A stretch of DNA of 64,000 nucleotides from Cyanophora paradoxa CCMP329. Taxonomy: Eukaryota > Plantae > Glaucophyta. This document shows positions 40,216 through 64,000 of this stretch, piece by piece. A program made the position numbers and the translations under genes. Below the pieces are notes generated by a model. The model saw nothing but the letters and a program-made list of their open reading frames with translations. It searched no databases and was not told the DNA's origin. The DNA lies in contig QPMI01000490.1 in assembly GCA_004431415.1 (NCBI GenBank), positions 62,001 through 126,000 on the forward strand. Reading direction: 5' to 3'. Positions within the stretch are counted from its first letter, which is position 1, and each line of letters opens with the position of its first letter.

Positions 40216-40748
40216 TGAATTCGTCACAGTCACAGTTTGCGCATGCAGTCACAGTCACAATATGCAGTTCGAATTCGTATACGTACTTGCAATTGATTCA
40301 ACAGTGCGCGTGTTGTGTTATTAGTGCTTCAATATACTAGTTCTAGTCACTGAGTACAAGATGTTACTAGTCTGGTACTTCACTATGAGCTTTCGCAAGC
40401 CATATTAGCAGCAATGAATGTGCATGTCGCGATAATCCTGGAAAATTAAAATGAAATGGATCTGTAGGCATAGGCCGTGACAGCCACGTACACTGAGTAA
40501 TCTGAACTAAAAGACCGAGCAGTAAAGGGCTGTGTAAATGTGCAGCTGGGGGCTTAAATCGGCCCTCGGCCGCGATCGAGATCGGCCCTCGCGATCGACA
40601 GCTGCAGGTGACTGCCCACGGCCAGGCCTGAACACAAGATCGCGATGGGGAGGGGGGCGCCCCGACCGCGCCCCCTCCGGGAGCTCCCCGACCCTCGCGA
40701 GCCATCGGGCGCCGCCGCCCGGCGGCCGCCCCGCGGGCCACAGCCGCA

Positions 40749-43700
40749 TCAACGCGGCCCCGCCGCCTTCGCCCGCAGCCGCGTCACCTCCTGCGCAGCC
40801 CCGAGGTGCGGTCAGGGCCGACGGCCGCGGACGAGGCCGGCGCGACGCCGGCGCAGCCCCAGAGGCGAGGTCAGGGCCGAGGGCCCGGGGGGCCGGGGCC
40901 GGACGAGGCCGGCGCGACGCTGACGCTAAGGATCTGGGGGGCCGCCGCACCTCCATGAGGGCGCGGGCAGCGTCGGCCTCGCCCTGCGCCCGCATGACGA
41001 CGGAGAGGTTCTGCATCGCCGCCAGCACGTTCGGGTGCTCCGCCCCGTGCGCCCGCCTCAGCAGCCGCAGCGCCTCCTGCGAGGGGTCGAAGACGCGTGA
41101 GGAGGGGGAGGGCAGAGGGGGAGGAAAGGCGGGCGGACCTCGAGGAGGGGGCGGGCGGCGGCGGTGTCGCCCTGGGCGTGCGTCAGGTTGGCCAGGTTCA
41201 GCGTGTACGCCGCCACCGCCGCGTGCTCCGCCCCCAGCGCCGCCCTCTTCAGCCCCAGCATCTCCTGAGGGAAGGAGGAGGTCATGATCAGCCGAACGCC
41301 GGGGGAACGATCAGCGGCTGATCGCGCGCGCGCCTGGTACGCGGCGCGGGCGGCGGGGACGTCGCGCTGCTCGAGCAGCAGCGCCGCCAGTGCCTCGAGC
41401 GTCGTCGCCACGTCGGCGTGCGCCGGGCCCAGCGCCTTCTTCAGCAGCCGCAGCGCCTCCTGCGCGGGTCGCTCTCAGGTTCCAGAGGGCCCCCAAGAAG
41501 GCGAAGGCGCCGGCGCGCGCGCCTCGAGGACGGGGCGGGCGGCCGCGTAGTCCTTCTGGGCGTACAGCAGGCCCGCCAGGTTCTGCATCATCCGCCCCAC
41601 GTCGGGGTGCTCCGGCCCCAGCGCCTTCTTGAACACCCGCAGCGCCTCCTGCAAGGGCGACGGATGTCAGATAGGACTTTCGCGGAGGCGCGGGCGCGCG
41701 CGGGCGCGCGGGGCACCTCGTAGAGGGGCCGGGCGGAGGAGAGCTTTCCCTGCGCGTGCAGCAGCTGGGCGAGCCGCTGCGTCGTGTTCGCGACGTCGAG
41801 GTGGTCCGCCCCCAGCGCCTTCTTCCGCAGCCTCAGCGACTCCTGCGGAGCGGCGGGCGTCAGGCACGGGCGGCGGCCGGGTAGGCGGGCTGGCGCCGGC
41901 GGGCGCGCCTCGAGCATGGTCCGGGCCCCGGCGGCGTCGCCCTGGTCCTGCAGCAAGAGCGCCAGGTTCTGCAGCGTCGTCGCCTGCTGCGGGTGCTCCG
42001 GCCCCAGTGTCTTCTTCTGCACCCGCAGCGCCTCCTGCATGCGCGGCGTTGAAATCAAGAAAGCGAGAGGAAGGAGGAAGGCAGGGGGCCGGCACCTCGT
42101 ACAGGGGCCGCGCCGCCGCGAGCTTGCCCTGCGCCTTGAGCGCCAGGGCCAGGTTCTGCATGGTGCCCGTCACGTCCGGGTGCTCCGGCCCCATCGACTT
42201 CTTCAGCAGGCGCAGCGCTTCCTGCGCGGCGCGGAGAACGATCAACGATCTAGAGAGGGAGGGGGGCGGCGGGGGGCGCCGGCCGGACCTCGAGGAGCGG
42301 CTGCGCCGCCGCGTAGTCCCCCGCGCCGATCCGCATGCTCGCGAGGTTCTGCATCGTCTTCGCGACCTGCGGGTGCTCCGCCCCGTGCGCCTTCTTCTGC
42401 ACCCGAAGCGCCTCCTGCGCAGGCCGGTCCGAAGCCGTCAGCGGTGCGGGGCGAAGGGCAGGGAAGCAGATCTAGAGGCCCCGGTGGGGAGAGTGGCTGC
42501 GCGAGCGCGCGCTCGCCTCGAGCATGGGCCGCGCGGCGGCGGCGTCGCCCGTGGCGTAGAGCAGCAGGGCCAGGTCCTGCATGGCGGAGGCTACCTCGGG
42601 GAGCTCCGCCCCGCCCGCCTTCCTCTGCAGCCGCAGCGCCTCCTGCTCGGAAAAGGTCAGAGCTCGGAAAAGAGCGCAGAAGCGACGGGGCGGCGCGCCA
42701 CACCTCGTAGAGGGGCCGGGCGGCCGCGTAGTCGCCCTGGGCCTCGTGCAGGTTGGCCATCTTCTGCATCGCCCTCGCCACGTTCGAGTGCTCGGGCCCC
42801 AGCGCCTTCTTGTAAAGCTGCTGCGCCTCCTGCGCGGGGCGGCCGGGGCGGCCGGTCACCGACACGGACGAAGCCTAGACCTAGGGCGGGGAGGAGGAGG
42901 CGGCGGGGGCGGGCCTCGAGCAGGGGCCGCGCGGCCTTGAAGTCGCCCTGGGCCTTGAGCAGGGTGGCCAGGTTCTCCAGCGCCAGCCCGACCTCGGGGT
43001 GCCCCGGCTCCAGCGTCTTCCTCCGCACCCGCAGAGACTCCTGCCCGGCCCGCGCGCGTGGGACTCCGGCGCGGATCCGGAGAAGAAGGGGCCGGGCGCC
43101 GGGCGCCGGTCGCACCTCGTAGAGGGGGCGGGCCCCCGCGAAGTCGCCGGTCGCCATCCGCAGGTTCGCGAGGCTGAGGGCCGCCGCCGCCGCGTCCGCG
43201 TGCTCCGGCCCCCTCAACTTCGTCTGCAGCCGCAGCGCCTCCTGCGCGACCGGAAGTCAGCGGGCGCGGAGGGGCGGGTCGGCAGAGCGCGCCTGGAGGA
43301 ACGGGATGCCCTCGCCGGCGCGGCCCATCGCGTCCAGGAGGACGCCCGCCCGCCGCAGGTCCGCCGGGTCCGCCTCGTCGCTGCCCTTGTGCAGCGCCGC
43401 CGCGAGCCGCCCGGCCGCCTCCGCCGGGCGCCCGCTGGCGAGCCAGAGCCGAGCCGCCTCCGCCTCGTCCAGGTGCCGGAGGACGTCGGGCCGGCACAGG
43501 ACGTCCGCGAGGCGCTCCGCCGAGCCCGGCCCGCCCCGCGCCAGCGCCCAGGGCGCCTCCTCCGCGCGCCGCTGCGACGCCGGCCGCCGCGCGAAGAAGG
43601 CGCCCAGGCTCGCGTGCATGGCCGCCCGCTCGCCCTCCACCGGCGCCAGCGCGCCGCCGGCGCCCCGCCGGCCTCGCGGGCCAGGCCGAACTCGAGCTCG

Positions 43701-44947
43701 GCCGCCTCGCCGGCCGAGCGGTGCGCGAAGGCGAAGAGGCCGCCCCCGGAGGCGAGGAGCGGCCGGAACTCGCCCCAGAAGCGGTCCCACTCCTCGGGCT
43801 CGGGCCCGCCGATGTTGTCGACGCCCACCAAGGCCTTCAGCTCGTCCTCCGCCATGCCGCGCCGGGCGCACGCGACGGCCGATGCCGCCTCGCGCACGAG
43901 CGACGCGCCGTGGCGCGCGGCGAGGCGGCGCAGGACGGCGCGGAAGAGGTCCCGCGGCGCGCCCCCGCAGCCGAGCAGCGCGTCAACTTCGGCCTCGAGG
44001 TGGGCCTCGGCCGGGGCGCGCGAGAGCTCGTCGAGGAGGACGGCGAGGAAGAGCGGGCGGCGGCACGCCTCGGCCCGCGCGACGCGCTCGAGGCACGCGT
44101 CGGGCAGGGGGCGCCCCCGCTCGCGGAGCGCGGCCTCGGCCGCCGCGCGGCGCCGGGCCTCCGAGAGCGGCGCGACCTCGCGCGCCGTGTGAGGCCTCGC
44201 CATCGCCGCGTCGAGGACAGGGCCTGCGCGCGGGGCCGCGTCGGCGGAGCGCCGGGCGCGCGAGCGGCGGCGGCCGCCGCACCGCGCGGGCCGCTCGAGA
44301 CGAGGATGCGGAGGCGGGGGCCGGCGGCTGGCGGGAGCCATGCGAGGTCGCGCACGGCGGTCGCCGAGTCTTCCCGGAGCGCGTCCAGACCGTCCAAGGC
44401 GAGGACGACGCGGGCGGCCGAGCTGGAGGCGCCAGCGGCGAGGAAGGCGCTCAGGCGGGCGGCGACCTCGGCCTCCGAGCCGCGCAGGTTGAGGCCCTCC
44501 GTACCGGGCCATTGGGCGCGGATCACATCCCCGCTGAGGCGCCTGCCGGGCGCGTGAGCATCCGTATAAGTGGGGATGAGGGGCGCGTGCGGCGCGGGCC
44601 GCGCGGCGCCCGCACCGGGCGATGGAGGCGAGCGGCGCGCTGCCCTGCGATTCGAAGCCGAAGTACAGAATCATCACGTCGTCCGGGTGCAAGGCCGCCC
44701 ACTCTTTCGCCCAGTTGGCGAGGAGAGCTGCCGGCGGCGCATGCGGTCAGCTCGATCGGATCGAGCGGGCGGATCGATAGAACTGCGCATGCACACCGCT
44801 CTTGCCGCAGCCTTCCTCCCCGCGCACGATGAGGATCTCAGGCCCCGAGGCCGCCGCGTACGCGCTCAGGGCCTCCATCTCCTCCTCGTCGCGCACAAAC
44901 ACACGCTGCAGCATCGCGTCGCCCGCCCGCTCCGCGGGCTGATCCAT
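40749..44947 (-). CDS. NACHT/STAND NTPase + 42-aa TPR array (nephrocystin-3/NLR-like architecture)
   Basis: Walker A GEEGCGKS|ALLANW spanning an intron, Walker B VVLALDGLD, then LAWLP, PLFL and LFAFAH motifs. Twelve kinesin-light-chain-type TPRs (EALRLQKKALGPEHP.VA..MQNLA.LL.AQGD.AAARPLYE). Stop TGA 40749-40751. The start codon could be in an upstream exon. Confidence 0.85.
40951..43241 (-). repeat. Array of 12 exact 126-nt phase-0 exons, one TPR each
   Basis: Exons 43241-43116, 43040-42915, 42829-42704, 42642-42517, 42414-42289, 42221-42096, 42034-41909, 41842-41717, 41648-41523, 41459-41334, 41264-41139 and 41076-40951. Each is preceded by CAG and followed by GT or GC. Confidence 0.92.
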
Positions 44948-45529
44948 CGCAGACCCCGCCGGAGCATGTACCCCCCGAGACCCGAACTTCAGATCTGCGC
45001 CCTTCTTTTCGCATGACGTCGACGCGCTCTGAAGTCAATTCTAGGCGCAGCGCGGTGCAGGGAAGGCGGTGCAGGCCCGCTGCAGCCCAGGCGAGCTAGC
45101 GTCACATCCGGACTACAGCCGTTTCTCAGTGCTTCAGATCTAGCTATATAGACCCGATCAACCGATCGGCCCGACAGAATACATCCTCCGGCTGCGTACG
45201 TTGGTTTTGGAGAAGATCCCGGCCTCAGCTCCCAATTGTAAGCTCACGCCCGAACGTCAGACTAGTACTTAAGCTTGCACATGCATATGCATATGCGCAT
45301 GCCGGGCGAGAGCTGAGCTTTACATCGAACCGTTGGACCCCCGAAGTTCCAGCTCATGATTAGGACGTGCAACCCGCACGGGGGCCGACGCGTGCAGATC
45401 GATATCTTGAGATAGGACCGGTATACGTACCGGCCGCGGCGCGGCCCGGACGTCGACCGGGCAGAGCGCGACGTAGCCTCCGGCCGGCCGGCCAGCGCTG
45501 ATCCCTCTGAGCGATCTCGGGGCAAGGCC

Positions 45530-47476
45530 ATGGGCGTCGTGGTCTCGTCGGCGTCCGTGGCGTCTTCTCCGCCCTCCTCGCACTCCAGCTTCCAGCTGGA
45601 AAAGCCCGGGGCCGGCTCGCAGCGCCGCGGCTCGCGGCCGCGCACGCTCTCGGGCTCCTCGTCGGCGTCGGGATCGGGCGAGGCGCAGCCGCAGCCGCGG
45701 CTGCACTGGGCGCTCGCGCACGTGCACCGCCTCCAGGCGCACCTCCGCCAGCGCCTCGACTCGAACGCCCTACCGGACCCCGAGCCGCACGAGGAGGAGG
45801 CCCCCGCCCCGGCCCCGGCCCCGGCCCCGCCCCGGGCTCCTCCGGCGCGGCACGGCAGCTGGGGCTCGCGGCGGGGGTCGACGTCCCTGAACCGGGACCG
45901 GACGCCGGAGCGCCCGGAGCCGCCGGACCCCGCCGCCGCCGCCGCCGCCGCCCGCATGCTCAAGACGTTCGAGCCTTCCGCCGTCCCTTCCCTCACCGTC
46001 TGCCCCCCGCCGGCCCCGCCCCGCTCCGCCCCCGAGCACCCCGCCGAGCCGCCCCCGCGCTTCCTGCACGGGGCGCGGGAGGGGTACGGCGAGCTGGAGC
46101 GGGCGGGCCTCTCGCTGCCCGCGCTGGCGGCCCTCGTCAACCACGCGGAATTCGCGGGGGACCCGGAGGCTTGGGCCCCCGCCCTGCTCGCCCTCGCCCT
46201 CTGCGAGCTCGCCGACCGCGGGCTCGCCGGCTTCGCCCCCCCCGCCGAGGACGGCATCGCCGCCGGCGAGGCCGGGTACGGCAACTTCGCCGTCGTCCTG
46301 GCGGATCCGGGGGGGTACGAGGATGCCGAGGGGCCGGGGCTGCCCGGGGGGCTGGGGGCCATCGCCGCCTTCGTCGCCTCGCGGGGCGGGCGGGCCACGA
46401 CCCTCGAGATCTGCCGCGCCTTCATCGCTCAGGTGAGCCAGATCCCGCCCTGGCCCGCGGCCGGCGCCCCGCCGCCCCGGACCGGAGCCGGCTGGGCTGA
46501 CCGCTTACCCCCCCGCGCAGCGCGACCCGGAGGCGGAGGAGGGCACCGGGGTGCGGGGCCGCGTCTACTCCCGGGTACCCTTCCCCCCTTCCCCCCCCCT
46601 CTCCTACCCCGTCTCACGGGCCCCAGTACACGGGCGCGCTCTCGCGGGAGCTGGCGGAAGCCGGCCTCAAGCGCGTCCTGCCCCACGTCGCCGCCTTCCG
46701 CCTCCCACCCCGCCCCGCCCCGCCCCCCTCGGGCCCCGGGGGGCCGGCGCCGGCGCCGGGCGGGGCCGGCGGGGGCCGCCCCGCGATCTCGCCCTCGTGC
46801 CCGCTGACGCCGGCGGGGCGGCGGGCGGCCGTCGCCGGCGCCGTGCTCGCCGGGGCCCTCTGGGAGGCCGAGCGAGCCCGCCGCGCCCTCTCCCTCCTCT
46901 CCCGCGGCCTCCTCCGCCAGCTCTGCTCGGGCCCCCTGTACGCGTACCCCCCCGCGGAGGAGCCCGCGGCGGCGTACCCCCGGAACCCCATCCCGGCGGC
47001 GCTGATGCTGGCTCTGGAGGATAGGCAGCGCCCCCGGTTCGCCGCCTCCCTTGCCGGGCCCGCCGGCGCCGGGCCCGGCGCCGACCCCCTCCCGGGCCTC
47101 GGGCGCGTACCCCCCGAGCCCGAGCCCCCCGGGCCAGAGGGCGGGCCCGCCTTCTCCATCGACTCCGCGGACGTCCTAGCGTGCGCCGGCTACCCCTCCC
47201 CCCCCTCCTCTTCCTCACCTGAGGCGCCTCCCCCCCCCCCACCGCAGGCGGGTGCTGTTCCTCACGGAGTCGCGGCGCCCCTGGGGGCGGCGGCACCTCT
47301 GGGAGAACACGTGGGTGGCCGGCCTCGCCGCCGCCCGCGAGAAGGAGAGCCCCGGCCCCGGCCCCGGCCCCGGCCCCGAGCCCAGCCGGCAGCGCCCCGC
47401 CCCCTTGGCCTGGGCCCCCCCGGCTCCCCTGGAGCTCCCTGGCCCCGCCCCGCCCCTCCCGATCGCGGCCGCGTGA
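45530..47476 (+). CDS. Hypothetical protein, multi-exon, divergent from the NACHT-TPR gene
   Basis: Long first coding exon 45530 to about 46432 ending at CAG|GTGAG. Further exons (AGALWEAERARRALSLLSRGLLRQL; VLFLTESRRPWGRRHLWENTWVAGL). No recognised domain. Confidence 0.5.
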
Positions 47477-57400: not shown

Positions 57401-57861
57401 GGAGCTGGGGCTCGAGCATCTCGTTTTTATGGTCGAAGAAGACTTCTTCGGAGAGCGCCGCACCGTTCCGCTGCGCCCCGGCGGCGAGCAAGAGCCCGTC
57501 ACCGACGCCAACAAGGCCCGCGCGCGCCCTCCGTCCCCAAATTCCACAATCGGGCGCCCCGGGGGCCCTCACGTGCCACGTACGCGTGCACAATCGTAGA
57601 AAGAGTACGTTCGACTGGCAGCGGACTACTACATTGTTGGGCGCGTCCGCCAGGAGGCTCGCCCACTGCCCGCCATGCCCCGCCCCCCCGCCGCTCGCGC
57701 TGTTCCTCGAATCATTTCCGCAGCTGGATGCGCTGCGGGAGGGGCTGCGGCTGGTGCTGCCCGCAGCTGCGTCGCGGATGTTGAGTTCAACCGAGCTGCG
57801 CATGATCGTCGAGGGGCTCCACACAATCGACGTGGAAGACTGGCGACGCAACACTCGCTAC
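51467..57861 (+). pseudogene. HECT-type E3 ubiquitin ligase gene, interrupted within the HECT domain by the AT-rich element
   Basis: HECT N-lobe VAFEGEPAVGDGLKREYLTKLAHEFLDPNTALF..YYP, VPLRPGGEQEPVTDANK|KEYVRL, LSSTELRMIVEGLHTIDVEDWRRNTRY. A stop (TAG 57868-57870) then falls inside the foreign DNA. The C-lobe with the catalytic Cys is absent from the window. Confidence 0.85.
52401..55570 (+). repeat. Intragenic tandem duplication (about 52401-53760 vs about 54265-55570) in the HECT gene N-terminal region
   Basis: LLYACSEGDLFAALALALFGAKW vs LLHACATGSLFAALALALFGARW. NANRFALDVLYAAG vs NANRFAIEVLCAAG. EAPAVGEALLGAVTRAAGGPQAEL..ILRAGIPGVRAFAATER..SKCPAD occurs in both copies, with matching intron positions. 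Confidence 0.88.
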
Positions 57862-58146
57862 CACACATAGTAAAATGCGGAGTTTTAACCCTCGGCTTAT
57901 CTTAATTGATTTTGTTGATATATCTCGTATATTCTATTTCAATCAATCGTTAATCTGTGTATATCTTATCGAATATTCATTTATTTCGATTATTTTGTAT
58001 TCTTTTCGATATTTTATCGTAAATTTCTCTTATTTTCCGATTAGTCTTACTGAGTGAATCGATAATCTGTATATGTTTCCGAATAATATAACTGAATCTC
58101 AATTAGATCTTGCCTCTGGTTAAAACTCCGCATTTTACTATGTGTG
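57862..58146. repeat. 285-bp terminal palindromic unit with perfect 29-bp inverted arms
   Basis: CACACATAGTAAAATGCGGAGTTTTAACC (57862-57890) and its exact reverse complement (58118-58146). The interior is degenerately symmetric. Confidence 0.95.
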
Positions 58147-58397
58147 ATTGGTCTAAAAGTTAATTGATTTAATCGATATTATATTCATGTACTTTCTCGA
58201 TTAAATTTAATTAAATTTAATTCATTTAATCGGAAACATATCGCTAAACTCGATTAAGATCCATAAATGATTCATTTGTTTATATTAACAAATCGATCTC
58301 TTATTGAATCCAATCGTAATTATACATGAAACTTATATGTTTTTATCATGTTTTAATGATTCTAAGGGGGGACCCTTAGGATTTTTGAAATAATTGG

Positions 58398-58488
58398 GTG
58401 TGACAGGTGTGACAGGTCCATCCAAGGAAAGTCCTAGTGAGAAATTGATTTTTAAAATCCACGGATAGACCTGTCACACCTGTCACAC
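58398..58488. repeat. 21-bp perfect inverted repeat built from tandem GTGTGACAG 9-mers
   Basis: GTGTGACAGGTGTGACAGGTC (58398-58418) and GACCTGTCACACCTGTCACAC (58468-58488). Extends to 26 bp with one mismatch. Confidence 0.95.
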
Positions 58489-58525
58489 ATACCATATTCA
58501 GTAAGGACCTCATATATTGTTAAAA

Positions 58526-58835
58526 TCTCAGTGTTAGTTGGTGTAGTTGATTCAAATGTGATCTTAGGAATGTGATTTAAAATCTTTCAGGCAGCATTTA
58601 TTTGTCAGGCATTAAATCCATCGATTTTGACAAAGTATTTTATTTTGGCAAAGTCATTGTTTGGATCAACAATGAAATTTGAATTATAGAAAAGTTTTCT
58701 AAAAAGGTGCCTGACAATGCCTGACATACTATATAAGTGCCTGACAACTATATTATAGTGCCTGACAAACCATATATGGTAATACTATATGATATCTTCT
58801 ACTTTCTCAGTGTTAGTTGGTGTAGTTGATTCAAA
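58526..58835. repeat. 31-bp direct repeat pair enclosing a TGCCTGACA iteron-like cluster
   Basis: TCTCAGTGTTAGTTGGTGTAGTTGATTCAAA at 58526-58556 and 58805-58835. TGCCTGACA at 58708, 58718, 58738 and 58759, with an inverted copy at 58603-58611. Confidence 0.92.
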
Positions 58836-59258
58836 AAATGCATTTATACTCTGATTCATTGTTATTTCCTGTGAAATTTGAGTCAACTCAACCCACTTAG
58901 TCAACCCTTGCATTGAATTCGTAACAAAATCCATATACTTTTACTACTTTTACGATTAATATGAGTCAACCTTGAGTCCACTTAAATATAAATATAATAT
59001 AATAGGGGGAATCAAGGGGAGATGCTGAGTGTTATTGTAAGGAAATCGAATAGTATTCGAAATACTTGACATTGCTTAATGTAGGGTGCATTCATATTTC
59101 GGCTACATCATACAGTAGAATTCTATTGTAACAAAAGCTACTGTAGAAAGAAAATCATTGTAGAAAGCTATTGTAGGAAAGGATATATTATATCCTTTTT
59201 TAACGATTGCCATTGTAATAAAAAAGGTAAATTACCCTGTTTATCATTATAGAAACCA

Positions 59259-59656
59259 TCAAAACGGGAATCTATCATGTTTATGTCTCTCAGTCTTCTC
59301 AAATGTTAAGAAATTCATTGTTTTATCGATCTCATCTGCTACTGATTGTGTTTTATGCTGAGCTTCTTTACCACAACTGAATATATCAATTGCTAACATG
59401 CCTTCATTGGAATAACAATGAGCTGTGCAATGGCTTTCATCTAATAGCAGAACCAATGCAAAACCAGGAGGTGATAGTTTGCCATCAATATCTCACAATG
59501 CTTATGAACAATCCTAATACCTTGTCTCAATACTGCTTGTTCAAGGGTTCCCATAATCCAATTACCTAGGAAGCTAACATGCTCATATCCTGTTGCTATA
59601 GCTGATTTAGCTTTGTAATCAAGCATAACATGAAAGCCTCTGTATTGAGTCTCCAT
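59259..59656 (-). CDS. speD: Prokaryote-type (short, pyruvoyl-dependent) S-adenosylmethionine decarboxylase proenzyme; one apparent 1-nt deletion at about 59487
   Basis: Joined ORFs give METQYRGFHVMLDY..IVHKHCEI(F)DGKLSPPGFALVLLLDESHCTAHCYSNEGMLAIDIFSCG. This has the ESH self-cleavage motif and the DIFSCG motif. About 132 aa. Confidence 0.85.
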
Positions 59657-59685
59657 TAAGAATACCTTAGAAAAATTAATTAAAC

Positions 59686-59958
59686 CTAATCGAACCTAAT
59701 GCAAATATCCCTATACTCTACTCTAATTGATGAAGTAGCCCTTTTCCTATAAGCCTGAGAGTGCTTTTTGTTGCATTCCCTACACCCTGATCCCTTCACA
59801 TGATTAAAGGGATAGGTAAGGATCACCTTATTACACTGCAAACATCTAACAGATACTTTCTCTTGAGCTTTGATGTAATGTGTCTCACTGTAATCGAATT
59901 TATCTTTACCATGAACTGTCATAGCAGCATCAATAAACTTTTTTGTTTTACTATCCAT
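59686..59958 (-). CDS. Small Zn-ribbon protein (DUF723-like domain typical of viral homing-endonuclease-associated proteins)
   Basis: FIDAAMTVHGKDKFDYSETHYIKAQEKVSVRCLQC..PFNHVKGSGCREC. Confidence 0.7.
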   Translation of the reverse strand: MDSKTKKFIDAAMTVHGKDKFDYSETHYIKAQEKVSVRCLQCNKVILTYPFNHVKGSGCRECNKKHSQAYRKRATSSIRVEYRDICIRFD

Positions 59959-59980
59959 ACTCTATATATAACCAATATTC

Positions 59981-60810
59981 TTATGGAGCAGTATCCTGCC
60001 CAAAAATGGGGAAATATCGATTTGTGCCATAGTATTCAGCATAGGTATTCTGCCTTGCAATAAAATCGGTTCTCTCAGCATATAATACACACTTGTAGAT
60101 ACCAAACTTGGTGGCTCTCACCAGAAACTGATAGTCTTCCAAACCGAAATTGACTCCATGATAAGCAATACCAAAATTATCATATGGGGTGATCACAACT
60201 GCAAAATTAGGAGTTCCACCCTCCACTTGACATACAGCATATACATCTGGTGGAATATCCACAACAACCTTGTAGTGGTCACCAATCTCAACAAGAGAAT
60301 CTACTACTGCTGTCTGTTCATTTACTACAATGGGGAATATTTTGATTATATAGGGGCATTCATGCTGGGGACATAGGTTCGAATTCTTGTATTGGGATCA
60401 ATGGGATTGGGTTGATCATTCACAAATAAAGGCGCTCCAACAGCCCACCAACCCTAAGACCATCACCAATATAAGCTCCCCCGATTTGCAGTTAATAGCT
60501 CCCGACCTAGATTCAAAAGAATAAGTAGAAAGAGGATCTCCATAGCTATCTGGGTCTCCATAATGAGCAGAAAAGTTTGCATTGGTAACAAGTAGCTTAG
60601 TTGTCTTAACTATTCCATTATTTTTATCACATCTGAGTTCCTGTAATCTCAGTTTATGGGTGGAACCAAAGGTGTTCATTGTAGGTTGGACCTCTGTTGA
60701 TTGGAGACCCTCTACATCATCAAAAGTAGCATGCTGCAGAACATGGTTTGCTGGTGCAGCTAATGATAGCTGAGGTGTAATAATTCGTTCAAGTGGGGTT
60801 GCTCAGCCAT
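59981..60810 (-). CDS. Fibre/spike-like protein paralogue 2 (four apparent 1-nt deletions in homopolymers)
   Basis: Adding one base at 60795-98, 60478-82, 60444-46 and 60353-56 yields one ORF: MAEQPPLERIITPQLSLAAPANHVLQH..LRLQELRCDKNNGIVKTTKLLVTNANF..SGGAYIGDGLRVGG..DIPPDVYAVC. It is colinear with paralogue 1. Confidence 0.65.
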
Positions 60811-60832
60811 TTTACATTAAAGGATATATCTT

Positions 60833-61686
60833 TTATGGGGTTGGGTCATCAATTACATCTAATTCTTGGTAAAATCCTGTTGTGAATATATCAGCAACAT
60901 TTACCCCACGAAGTGCTGATACAGCTGCTATATCTGTTCTCAGTCCCATAATCATAGTATTGTATACTCCAACCTCAGTGACAAACAGATCATAGGTAAA
61001 TGTCAAATTGTTATAAACACAATATCCTCTGCCAAAATGGTTCGAAGCTTGAACAAAGAATAAGTAGTTGTGTCCTGGTTGATTATTATTGGCTCTACAC
61101 ATGGAAAGCATTGCAGTGGGAAGAGGAATATTTCTTCTTACTCGATCAGTTCCTGTAATGGAAACTAATTCCGAATTCTCAAGAGTTACAGAGGATGCAA
61201 CATAGAAATGCAAAAAAGGTTGCTGTGCAACAGGTGTGTAGAAACGAATTCGTTGTGGGTTCTCCACATTTTGTTCGAGAGTATCTGGACATCATTGTAG
61301 GAAACAGATGAAGATAGCTGACCTGAAACTCTGCAGCCACCACCAATAAATGCTCCTCCTGATCTCACAGTTACAGCAGCAGTGTTTTTATCATAATCAA
61401 GGGCTTTCAGATCAACACTGTAAGCATCAGGACCTCCATTAGTAGGCTGAAAGAAGTTAGCATTTGTGACAAGAAGTCGAGTTGTTTTAACCACACCAGA
61501 ATTCTTATCAGCTCTCAGCTCTTTAACTCGAATAATCGAATTTTTATCAAAGGAGTTACCATTGGAATTGGGTCTCTCTGTGGATTCTAAACCACGAACC
61601 TCATCATTAACTTCATGCTGGCGAAAGTGCATTGCAGGGGATCCAAGGGAATATATTGGAAGTTGAACTCGATTATATTCACCCAT
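60833..61686 (-). CDS. Fibre/spike-like protein paralogue 1 (one apparent 1-nt deletion at about 61287)
   Basis: ORFs 61186-61686 and 60833-61267 join as NDV(P)DTLEQNVENPQRIRFY. Contains IRVKELRADKNSGVVKTTRLLVTNANF and TAAVTVRSGGAFIGGGCRVSG. Confidence 0.68.
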
Positions 61687-61725
61687 TGCTTCTTTTACTA
61701 AGAAGGAAAGAAAAATAAACTACCA

Positions 61726-62031
61726 TCAAGCCAAAGTGATTAAATTCGATCCAAGGGATTGGTAAACAGTTGAAAGAACTTGCAGGTTGGACGTCATTGC
61801 TTTAATGTTGTTATCACACTCATTGTATTTAGCAACAGGGTCACCATATGCAGATTTGGCAAGGACATTAACCAAGAGGTTTTTATACTCATTGACAACT
61901 GGTGAGAGCTTATTGGTTTGCTGAATCGTTTTTTCAACTGTTTGTAATGCGTTTACAAGGGTGATTGTATCGAAAGAAAGCGCAACAGGCTCAGTAGAAT
62001 AGGTGGTTCCACCAAGTGGATAGGTTGCCAT
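61726..62031 (-). CDS. 101-aa hypothetical, largely helical viral protein
   Basis: Intact ORF whose ATG directly follows the TAATAA stops of the fibre gene. Amphipathic or coiled-coil pattern. Confidence 0.65.
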   Translation of the reverse strand: MATYPLGGTTYSTEPVALSFDTITLVNALQTVEKTIQQTNKLSPVVNEYKNLLVNVLAKSAYGDPVAKYNECDNNIKAMTSNLQVLSTVYQSLGSNLITLA

Positions 62032-62034
62032 TTA

Positions 62035-64000
62035 TTATACTGAGATATTTTTAATTTGATCTATTTGACTTTGGAGATTCTGACATGTTTGTGTTAAATC
62101 TTTGCATTTCTGGGATAATTCTTTAACGGCTTCTATGAGAACTGGAATTAAACCTGTGTATTCGAGAGCTAAGTAGCCATCGTCTTGTTTTGCTCTCACA
62201 ACTTCTGGTATTACCTGTTGCACATCTTGCGCAATTAAACCTAATCTTGTTCCATCTTTTTCACTTCCGATTCGTTTAAAACTCACTCCTTCTAATTTCT
62301 CTATTGCTGAAAGAGCGCCAGTTATCTTTTTAATATCGGTTTTGTATCTTCTATCGCTACCTTGTCCGAGATAGTTTCTAACCCACATGTATCCATCATC
62401 ATTTATAAATGCTACATGTGTATCCCACGTATTTCTAAATTCTACTACTGTTGTTGCATGTCCTCTAATATATGTAGTTGATGCTGAACCGAAATATATT
62501 CTTGAATAACCTTCACTTGAAGTAATCCAAGTTCCGGTTGCCCAAATGGTGCGTTCATCTTTACTAAAAACGTTATCCCAACTTATAAAACCATTTGCTG
62601 GGGCTGTTCTTCCTTTTTCTTTTGTCCATCCAATCATACCAATGTGACATCTCCCTTTCCTTGCAACAAATCTTACATGGGAGAATGTATCACAATGGAA
62701 AGAAGTCCATGTTAAGCCATCATGCCAGTCTGAATCGTAATTATTTGAAACGGCTTGGTAGCAATTCACCCTCATAATGTGATGCCACCTCCCATTTCGA
62801 TAGCCTCCAATATCGAAATATCTGCAATTTGTCCAACACATATACTGAACATGACATGTTTTCATATTGCCAGGGACTTCAATTTGCGCCCAACCACCAT
62901 CTGTTTCATCGCCTGAAATGTTACTATAAAATCCATCGACTGGATTTGTGTAGGTTGGTGTCCAACCTGTTGTCCAAGATCCACTAAATGATAGACCGGG
63001 GGAGCCTGTCCCACTCCAAGTATCAAAACTGGTAATATTTCCAATTGAATTAGTGACATCTGTTAACGACAGATAGGATGTAGGAATAGTAGGTTTACTA
63101 TAAACATTATTCCAATGAATAAAACCGGTAGAACCACCATGTGAACTACTATTAGCTCGATCGTGTGTAAAACCAATACCCATAATGTGAACTCTTCCGA
63201 CTCTCGGATAAATACGGAGGTGAGTAAATCGACCGGCAAGGAAGATTGGGACATTATTAACTCCATGGTGATGGTTATCTACACTACCATCGTGTGGGTG
63301 ATAATTATTTACTCTTGTAATAAATACAATTCCATTTGCTCTAACTCCCCAAATCTCAAAGTAACGGCAAGAATTCCATGGTAAATGTGTTAGGAATGCT
63401 GTCCCATTCACCAATGCGGTAGGTATTGTATACTGAATCCAAGTAGTTGTAGAAACTTCATCATTGCCTTCACTGTTATAGGCATAACTTCCATAATTGT
63501 ATCCTGGATCCCATTGCCACCCACTACCGATTGTCCAAGTTCCGCCCGATGAATGATAAGCACCACCCGCTACTGTGTCGTCGAAACCGTAAAATTTCGG
63601 AATCTCATAACCATTTCTTTTAATGTTGCAACATCTATTGTTGTTGCACCAATGGTGGTAGCGCTTATTGTCGGAACTGTCAAAGTGTTGTTTACCCAAA
63701 GGTTACCATTGTCATAAGACTTCAAAATGGCTGTATCTCCTGAATTTCTAAATTCAATTGACACACCTTCACCATTCCCATACCCTCGAATATATGTTGT
63801 ATTACCACTACCAAACCAAAACCTTGGAATATTATCTGTTGATTTGTGCCAGTCCACAGAATTCACTGTCAATAAACTACCTAATGTATAGGTCGCTTCT
63901 GCTTTTGTTGCATAAGTTGCTGCAAAATCCGGTTGCTAAACACATTGTCCCAACTTACCATTCCAATCTCATTATCTGTTGCTCTCTGTCTACTCCAACC
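62035..64000 (-). CDS. Modular tail-fibre/spike protein with C-terminal peptidase S74 intramolecular chaperone; 5' end outside the window; apparent 1-nt deletions at about 63618-21 and 63933
   Basis: C-terminus SDRRYKTDIKKITGALSAIEKLEGVSF..LGLIAQDVQQVIPEVV..LEYTGLIPVLIEAVKEL plus a coiled coil. Repeated WxNVxSK(P) linkers and duplicated beta-rich domains. Confidence 0.85.

Follow-up and report, generated by a model that had tools for sequence, protein, structure and literature searches.

The window analysed here is a 64-kb stretch (64,000 nt) of the genome of the glaucophyte Cyanophora paradoxa CCMP329 (contig QPMI01000490.1, positions 62,001 to 126,000). It contains, on its minus strand from 44947 to 40749, the gene tig00020876_g14848, which joins a NACHT-type nucleotide-binding module to an array of tetratricopeptide repeats (TPRs) spread over twelve exons of 126 nt. 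We consider it probable that this gene is an N-terminally truncated member of a Cyanophora-specific DUF4062(NIR)-NACHT-TPR expansion, and that its array is old, a frozen product of tandem exon duplication that is spliced constitutively. This is a genuine and transcribed gene whose reading frame is intact in RNA. Its product is, according to structural models, a 1002-residue NACHT-type STAND NTPase with a superhelix of 12-13 TPRs, and this domain architecture suggests a function in immunity. A first-pass annotation, made from the letters of the window alone, had gone further and proposed an NLR-like receptor in which the 12 repeat exons are interchangeable cassettes.

The gene comprises 17 exons and 16 introns as read from the window sequence, in a region with a GC content of about 73%. 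Its 5′ part consists of four exons (coding spans 44947-44797, 44727-44616, 44542-44283, and 44223-43293) that encode the NACHT NTPase module, followed by the twelve TPR exons and by a last exon of 13 codons. Exon 1 (44797-44974) carries a short 5′ untranslated region (UTR), the ATG at 44947, and the Walker A motif GEEGCGKS, and ends at a GT donor. Exon 2 (44616-44727, 112 nt) encodes the NACHT strand and helix that come after the P-loop. The Walker B motif VVLALDGLD and an LRILVSS strand are encoded by exon 3 (44283-44542, 260 nt), which displayed weak AAA_16 and NPHP3_N matches. Exon 4 (43293-44223; 931 nt in the window and 932 nt in RNA) encodes the helical and winged-helix domains, the latter with a FAHRS motif, then a linker and a 'repeat 0' that is TPR-like but degenerate, and closes with a GC donor at the repeat position that it shares with the TPR exons.

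The TPR exons were recovered by scanning for stretches of 126 nt that are open in frame 0, with AG before and G[TC] after them. Twelve such exons run from 43241-43116 down to 41076-40951, each translating to one 42-residue TPR period of the KLC/NPHP3 type. Seven of them are followed by GT donors, namely TPR exons 1 (43116-43241), 3 (42704-42829), 5 (42289-42414), 6 (42096-42221), 8 (41717-41842), 11 (41139-41264), and 12 (40951-41076), and five by GC donors, namely TPR exons 2 (42915-43040), 4 (42517-42642), 7 (41909-42034), 9 (41523-41648), and 10 (41334-41459). The exons are separated by introns of 51-102 nt, all in phase 0 and all at the same repeat position. Single TPR exons match Pfam TPR_10/TPR_12 with E values of 1e-5 to 6e-9, and the consensus of the 42-residue unit reads E-A-L-R-L-x-K-K-A-L-G-P-E-H-P-d-V-A-x-a-m-Q-N-L-A-x-L-L-x-A-Q-G-D-x-A-A-A-R-P-L-l-E. 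The earlier statement that every TPR is one 126-nt exon between phase-0 introns at a constant repeat position thus describes 12/12 exons, and the eight peptides quoted with it were all found, in TPR exons 2, 3, 4, 5, 6, 8, 9, and 11. Thirteen codons, the stop at 40749-40751, and about 440 nt of 3′ UTR make up the last exon (40307-40790), which opens like a 13th repeat period and lies behind an intron of 160 nt with an internal direct repeat. We considered a decayed exon inside this intron and rejected it, since the intron displayed no TPR similarity.

Evidence of transcription came from assembled RNA contigs of three runs (X1, X3, and X7) belonging to two studies. The contigs of a fourth run, X8, were unspliced, and we therefore treat X8 as a DNA run. 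Spliced RNA contigs cover the gene from about 44974 to about 40307. Their starts at 44965-44974 and their ends at 40307-40317 imply UTRs of about 27 nt (5′) and about 440 nt (3′) and no coding exon further upstream. Among the joints listed, at least nine intron joints match the prediction exactly, including those of four GC-AG introns; confirmed joints touch TPR exons 5, 6, 7, 10, 11, and 12, with a single joint each for TPR exons 4 and 9. The first two introns are implied by pieces of RNA contigs (44797-44973 and 44299-44541, 113 nt apart, with a joint 44541/44615). GC donors are used by 6/16 introns, those after exon 4 and after TPR exons 2, 4, 7, 9, and 10, four of which were confirmed directly by RNA. 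GC-AG introns usually make up about 1% of the introns of eukaryotes. The share observed here is far above that level, and the whole genome of this alga, which is very rich in GC, may show the same trait.

None of the joints listed from the three RNA runs links non-adjacent exon borders. A few odd joints (41434>41601, 42284>42531, 42929>43175, 44141>44260, 41710>43398, and 41086>42723) were examined as possible isoforms and rejected. They have sides of 21-23 nt, fall inside exons or introns and not at exon borders, are out of the repeat register, and one of them recurs in the DNA run; we read them as contigs of paralogues or of GC-rich repeats. In all three RNA runs, a contig connects the region near 40729 with that near 44589 via 20 letters consisting of G and C only, and a 4086-nt DNA contig of X8 departs from the window sequence at 40730. 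Both observations are probably artefacts of contig assembly at GC-rich repeats.

The RNA contigs also bear on the reading frame. In the window, exons 1-4 total 1454 nt, one base short of frame, and the frame of exon 4 is broken. At a C-run at 43662 (43662-43663), the window has four C and the RNA contigs of X1 and X3 have five, and with this additional base the frame is restored and the encoded protein reaches its 1002 codons. The 1-nt deficit of the window is probably an assembly error. A 38-nt intron was tried as an explanation of the frame break in exon 4 and rejected, as the RNA contigs are continuous there with one extra C. The public gene model, tig00020876_g14848.t1, spans the deficit by means of an 85-nt 'intron' and loses 28 residues in doing so; this intron is unsupported because the RNA contigs continue through that stretch. 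The model corresponds to EukProt protein P0001 of Cyanophora paradoxa (974 aa, 98% identical), which is the same as our exon model except at the deficit. For the comparison with P0001, the exons were joined with an N at that position, and single exons or P0001 were used in similarity searches. Our data thereby correct the public gene model, in which a spurious 85-nt intron masks the 1-nt deficit.

The 5′ exons encode a nucleotide-binding module with its motifs retained. Walker A and Walker B, in exons 1 and 3, are conserved across 13 paralogues, and the paralogue alignment places a retained FxH motif in the winged helix. Pfam assigned NACHT (PF05729) to P0001 with 41.0 bits (cut-off 26.7), NPHP3_N with 29.4 bits (cut-off 24.8), and TPR_10 over twelve stretches; NB-ARC was absent from the Pfam matches listed for P0001 at E<=0.001. 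Taken singly, the 5′ exons gave weak AAA_16 and NPHP3_N matches only. TPR_NPHP3 reached 233 bits on P0001, as a sum over nine partial stretches, and NPHP3_hel was weak and below its cut-off. An AlphaFold2 (AF2) model of residues 1-360, built from the alignment of 13 paralogues, had a mean predicted local distance difference test score (pLDDT) of 83.7, and Foldseek matched it to NLRP9, NLRP2/7, Apaf-1, NRC2, and Avs3 (E 1e-5 to 3e-7). Sequence searches against solved structures, with exon pieces and P0001:1-457 as queries, returned noise only. As modelled, residues 1-360 are a STAND NOD module formed by a nucleotide-binding domain, a helical domain, and a winged helix, a fold that does not separate NACHT from NB-ARC. 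The NACHT-TPR, NLR-like architecture proposed at first sight is therefore borne out by the NACHT score above cut-off on the public model together with the STAND fold.

The relation of exons to repeats was examined in an AF2 model of residues 400-974 (pLDDT 89.5), which displays alternating helices of about 16 and about 19 residues in a regular superhelix. In this model every exon border cuts the longer helix B about halfway along, and the Pfam register agrees, with position 1 of TPR_10 at exon residue 17. As modelled, each exon is one repeat period that runs from half a helix B through the loop and helix A into half of the following helix B, and not a self-contained hairpin. The half-helices missing at the two ends of the array are supplied by the end of exon 4 and by the 13-codon last exon, which completes the last helix B. 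Hence, the notion of one exon per repeat stands in the sense of one repeat period per symmetric 126-nt exon, but an exon is not equal to one TPR hairpin.

The first-pass annotation had noted a conserved scaffold in which specific helix positions vary. The most variable columns of the unit are 6, 16, 19, 26, 29, and 34, among which positions 19, 26, and 29 belong to helix A and, by helical periodicity, occupy one face together with the conserved Asn 23. This variable face is compatible with a binding groove, but it is expected of any TPR array. The Nei-Gojobori ratio of nonsynonymous to synonymous divergence (dN/dS) among the 12 exons was about 1.1 overall, a value for which synonymous divergence is capped by a GC content of 98% at third codon positions and the post-hoc choice of columns is circular. 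Diversifying selection is thus not supported, as variation in helix A is normal for TPR arrays and dN/dS is unusable at such a composition.

The layout of the array invites a reading in which the gene is an active combinatorial receptor, its exons being skipped, duplicated, or swapped so as to vary the ligands bound, be it by splicing or by recombination (somatic or germline). All twelve exons are symmetric (phase 0-0) and of equal length, so that any subset remains in frame, the number of repeats varies among paralogues, one of which (P0002) has almost identical repeats, and a brown alga, Ectocarpus, offers a precedent (PMC3341825). The RNA contigs of the three runs, however, include the exons at every joint listed. 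The age of the array points the same way: its exons are pairwise only 61-77% identical in nucleotides and 38-64% in amino acids, and its introns are mutually unrelated and leave no room for a spare exon of 126 nt. A tblastn search with the exons and 17 paralogues found no orphan TPR exon on either strand of the window outside the 12 exons. Neither interchangeable use of the exons, which the first-pass annotation had envisaged, nor recent exon turnover is upheld for this gene by these results, and we regard an active cassette system in this gene as extremely unlikely.

The closest paralogue, P0002 (tig00000241_g20969), has a different kind of array. Its eight 42-aa TPR units are 76-93% identical to one another and display no unit-by-unit correspondence with those of P0001, which suggests, from the sequences, recent tandem duplication or homogenisation. 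Repeat number differs among the paralogues, and, taken together with the near-identical units of P0002, this indicates that the family has seen turnover of repeats, of which this gene has had none in recent times. Within P0001, the central units 6 and 9 are nearest to the family consensus and the terminal units are the most diverged, a pattern that is usual for arrays shaped by unequal crossing-over. Since its repeats are old, its introns unrelated, and orphan exons absent, the exon-per-repeat layout of this gene is best understood as the frozen imprint of exons duplicated in tandem.

The array belongs to a large family. An exhaustive protein search found 756 relatives, among which P0001-P0019 and P0022 are all from Cyanophora and fall into separate clusters at 50% identity (at least 20), most of them on different contigs. 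Pfam detected an N-terminal DUF4062 in 8 of the 10 paralogues scanned, and phmmer matches to DUF4062-bearing proteins had E values of 5e-60 to 1e-13. In a tree of 23 NOD modules, from which P0009, P0013, and P0017-P0019 were left out as gapped or short, the Cyanophora sequences form a clade with 100/100 support relative to the nearest outsiders. Those outsiders (among P0021-P0040) are DUF4062-NACHT-TPR proteins of metagenome contigs and of a Thermodesulfobacteriota metagenome-assembled genome (MAG), with no other eukaryotes, and are 33-39% identical in the winged-helix region. That the nearest relatives are not eukaryotic could reflect an old transfer or poor sampling of glaucophytes.

The same family bears on whether the gene might encode a nephrocystin-3-like scaffold with a conserved non-immune role, for instance in the flagellum, an outcome that had been named as contrary to the receptor proposal. 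The DUF4062-NACHT-TPR architecture is the overall order of nephrocystin-3, human NPHP3 included, and of bacterial DUF4062-NACHT-TPR proteins; Cyanophora is a flagellate; and P0001 has NPHP3_N above cut-off, the 233-bit TPR_NPHP3 sum, and a weak NPHP3_hel. Yet the full NPHP3 set (PF25022/DUF4062, NPHP3_N, NPHP3_hel, and TPR_NPHP3) is incomplete in this gene. The N-terminal region is wholly absent from this copy, NPHP3_hel stays below cut-off, generic NACHT outscores NPHP3_N, and the TPR_NPHP3 score is assembled from partial stretches. Moreover, the nearest outside relatives come from metagenomes and bacterial MAGs, and the gene is one of at least 20 diverged clusters in a lineage-specific clade. 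This agrees with membership of a multi-copy family and not with a single conserved NPHP3 orthologue, and we hold a nephrocystin-3-like scaffold to be very unlikely.

The first-pass annotation had noted that no N-terminal effector domain was visible, and this was confirmed. The ATG at 44947 lies only 37 aa before the P-loop, the RNA contigs begin about 27 nt upstream of it, DUF4062 is absent from P0001 according to Pfam, and neither DUF4062 nor any other N-terminal domain of the paralogues had a match anywhere in the window. The first residues of P0001 align to the conserved linker that the paralogues carry just upstream of the P-loop. In the tree, P0001 groups with P0002 (91/65) and P0003, which bear DUF4062, on a longer branch (0.51 against 0.16 for P0002). 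The simplest account of the missing effector is therefore a derived loss, with faster change afterwards.

A gene that has lost a domain retained by most of its scanned paralogues may also be on its way out. It would then be a decaying paralogue, a truncated copy turning into a pseudogene and transcribed without a selected function. Its branch is three times as long as that of its sister P0002, the window has a frameshift at 43662, and what is left of a further repeat in the last exon is a stump of 13 codons. Against decay, the RNA contigs are in frame and carry an intact open reading frame of 1002 codons over 17 exons, transcripts occur in three runs of two studies, and Walker A, Walker B, and the FxH motif of the winged helix are kept. 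In addition, 12/12 repeats still score as TPR_10/TPR_12 and fold, in the AF2 model, into a regular superhelix (pLDDT 89.5). We consider decay unlikely, and favour a truncated but intact member of the expansion.

Several points weigh against the truncated, constitutively spliced member that we favour. Listed or implied RNA joints cover 11/16 introns, and low-level skipping of exons may still occur, as contigs drop rare isoforms. The extra base at 43662 was seen in 0 of a summed depth of 47 in the DNA run X8, a depth that mixes many partial contigs, so the genomic copy, frameshifted in the window, may after all be broken. The paralogues were compared as EukProt proteins, and the exon layout was read from DNA for this gene alone. 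Finally, the ligand, the oligomerisation, and the partner of this protein are all postulated.

Based on these findings, we propose how such an array may have arisen and how the protein may work. A 126-nt exon would have been tandemly duplicated together with its phase-0 intron, giving rise to an array of one period per exon. With this layout, repeats could be added or lost in the course of evolution while the reading frame is kept, and other family members display signs of such changes. In the protein, the groove of the TPR superhelix would bind a ligand, and the NACHT module would be held autoinhibited, as in the STAND family at large. By the same analogy, binding of the ligand would allow the module to exchange its nucleotide and the protein to oligomerise. 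As an effector domain is missing from this copy, its output would have to pass through hetero-oligomerisation with NADase-bearing paralogues, or the copy might act as their regulator or decoy.

The layout is reminiscent of the NB-ARC-TPR genes of Ectocarpus, whose TPR domain consists of phase-0 exons of 126 nt, each encoding 42 aa (Zambounis et al. 2012, PMC3341825). Both systems combine a STAND NTPase with TPRs of one period per 126-nt phase-0 exon, both are multi-copy families of algae, and both have been proposed as putative immune receptors. The two also differ. Ectocarpus is a brown alga and Cyanophora a glaucophyte, and Pfam identifies NACHT here and not NB-ARC, so that the layout probably arose independently, as had been suggested. 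Inactivated TPR exons inside introns, a hallmark of shuffling in Ectocarpus (PMC3341825), are missing from the introns of this gene, the window holds no gene cluster, and, unlike in the Ectocarpus genes used for comparison, the joints listed from RNA contigs show constitutive inclusion of exons.

DUF4062 is reported to be a TIR-like NADase ('NIR') that characterises NLR-like proteins, human TEP1, NWD1/2, and NPHP3 among them (preprints 10.64898/2026.05.01.722283 and 10.64898/2026.09.04.749371). The Cyanophora gene shares with DUF4062-NACHT-repeat proteins a homologous NOD module and 42-aa TPRs of the KLC/NPHP3 type. It differs from them in that this copy lacks DUF4062 and belongs to a lineage-specific expansion instead of being a 1:1 orthologue of NPHP3. 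Fungal NLRs form large and variable NACHT-TPR and NB-ARC-TPR families with highly conserved TPR, WD, or ANK repeats (Dyrka et al. 2014, PMC4986451). The paralogue P0002 resembles some of them in its very similar internal repeats, suggesting repeat turnover, whereas the repeats of the gene studied here are diverged and not highly conserved. To our knowledge, fungal NLR repeat arrays are not organised as one repeat per exon.

In our literature search, we found no paper linking Cyanophora to NACHT-TPR genes with one repeat per exon. The 126-nt TPR-exon design and the DUF4062-NACHT-repeat NLR-like proteins are already published, and by itself the gene shows no new mechanism. Specific to the present gene are its long branch and lack of an effector, an array that contrasts with the young one of P0002, and the corrected public model.

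Two features of the surrounding sequence may be recorded. A divergent gene on the plus strand starts at 45531, about 580 nt upstream of the ATG at 44947, and is covered by RNA contigs from 45536. Its product begins with M-G-V-V-V-S, a possible N-myristoylation start judging from these residues, and continues as low-complexity sequence rich in Ser, Pro, and Ala. At the right end of the window (57800-64000), the GC content falls sharply to 33-39%, which is unrelated to the NACHT-TPR gene.

With this gene, a glaucophyte joins the short list of lineages with NLR-like receptors that have one TPR per symmetric exon. Its switch domain is NACHT and not NB-ARC, which suggests that expansion of repeat sensors in intron-rich genomes gives rise to this layout time and again. 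An effector-less member within a family of DUF4062 (NADase)-NACHT-TPR proteins also bears on recent work on NIR/TIR-like NADases. On a more speculative note, the Cyanophora family might be a germline-diversifying repertoire of innate immunity, in which effector-less members serve as sensors or regulators paired with NADase-bearing 'helper' paralogues. This idea, to which we assign a low probability, draws on the at least 20 DUF4062-NACHT-TPR clusters, the symmetric one-repeat exons, the variable repeat number, and young arrays of the P0002 type. If true, such a repertoire would be an independent parallel, in a unicellular relative of plants, to the sensor/helper NLR networks of plants, and a convergent reinvention of the exon-per-repeat design of brown algae.

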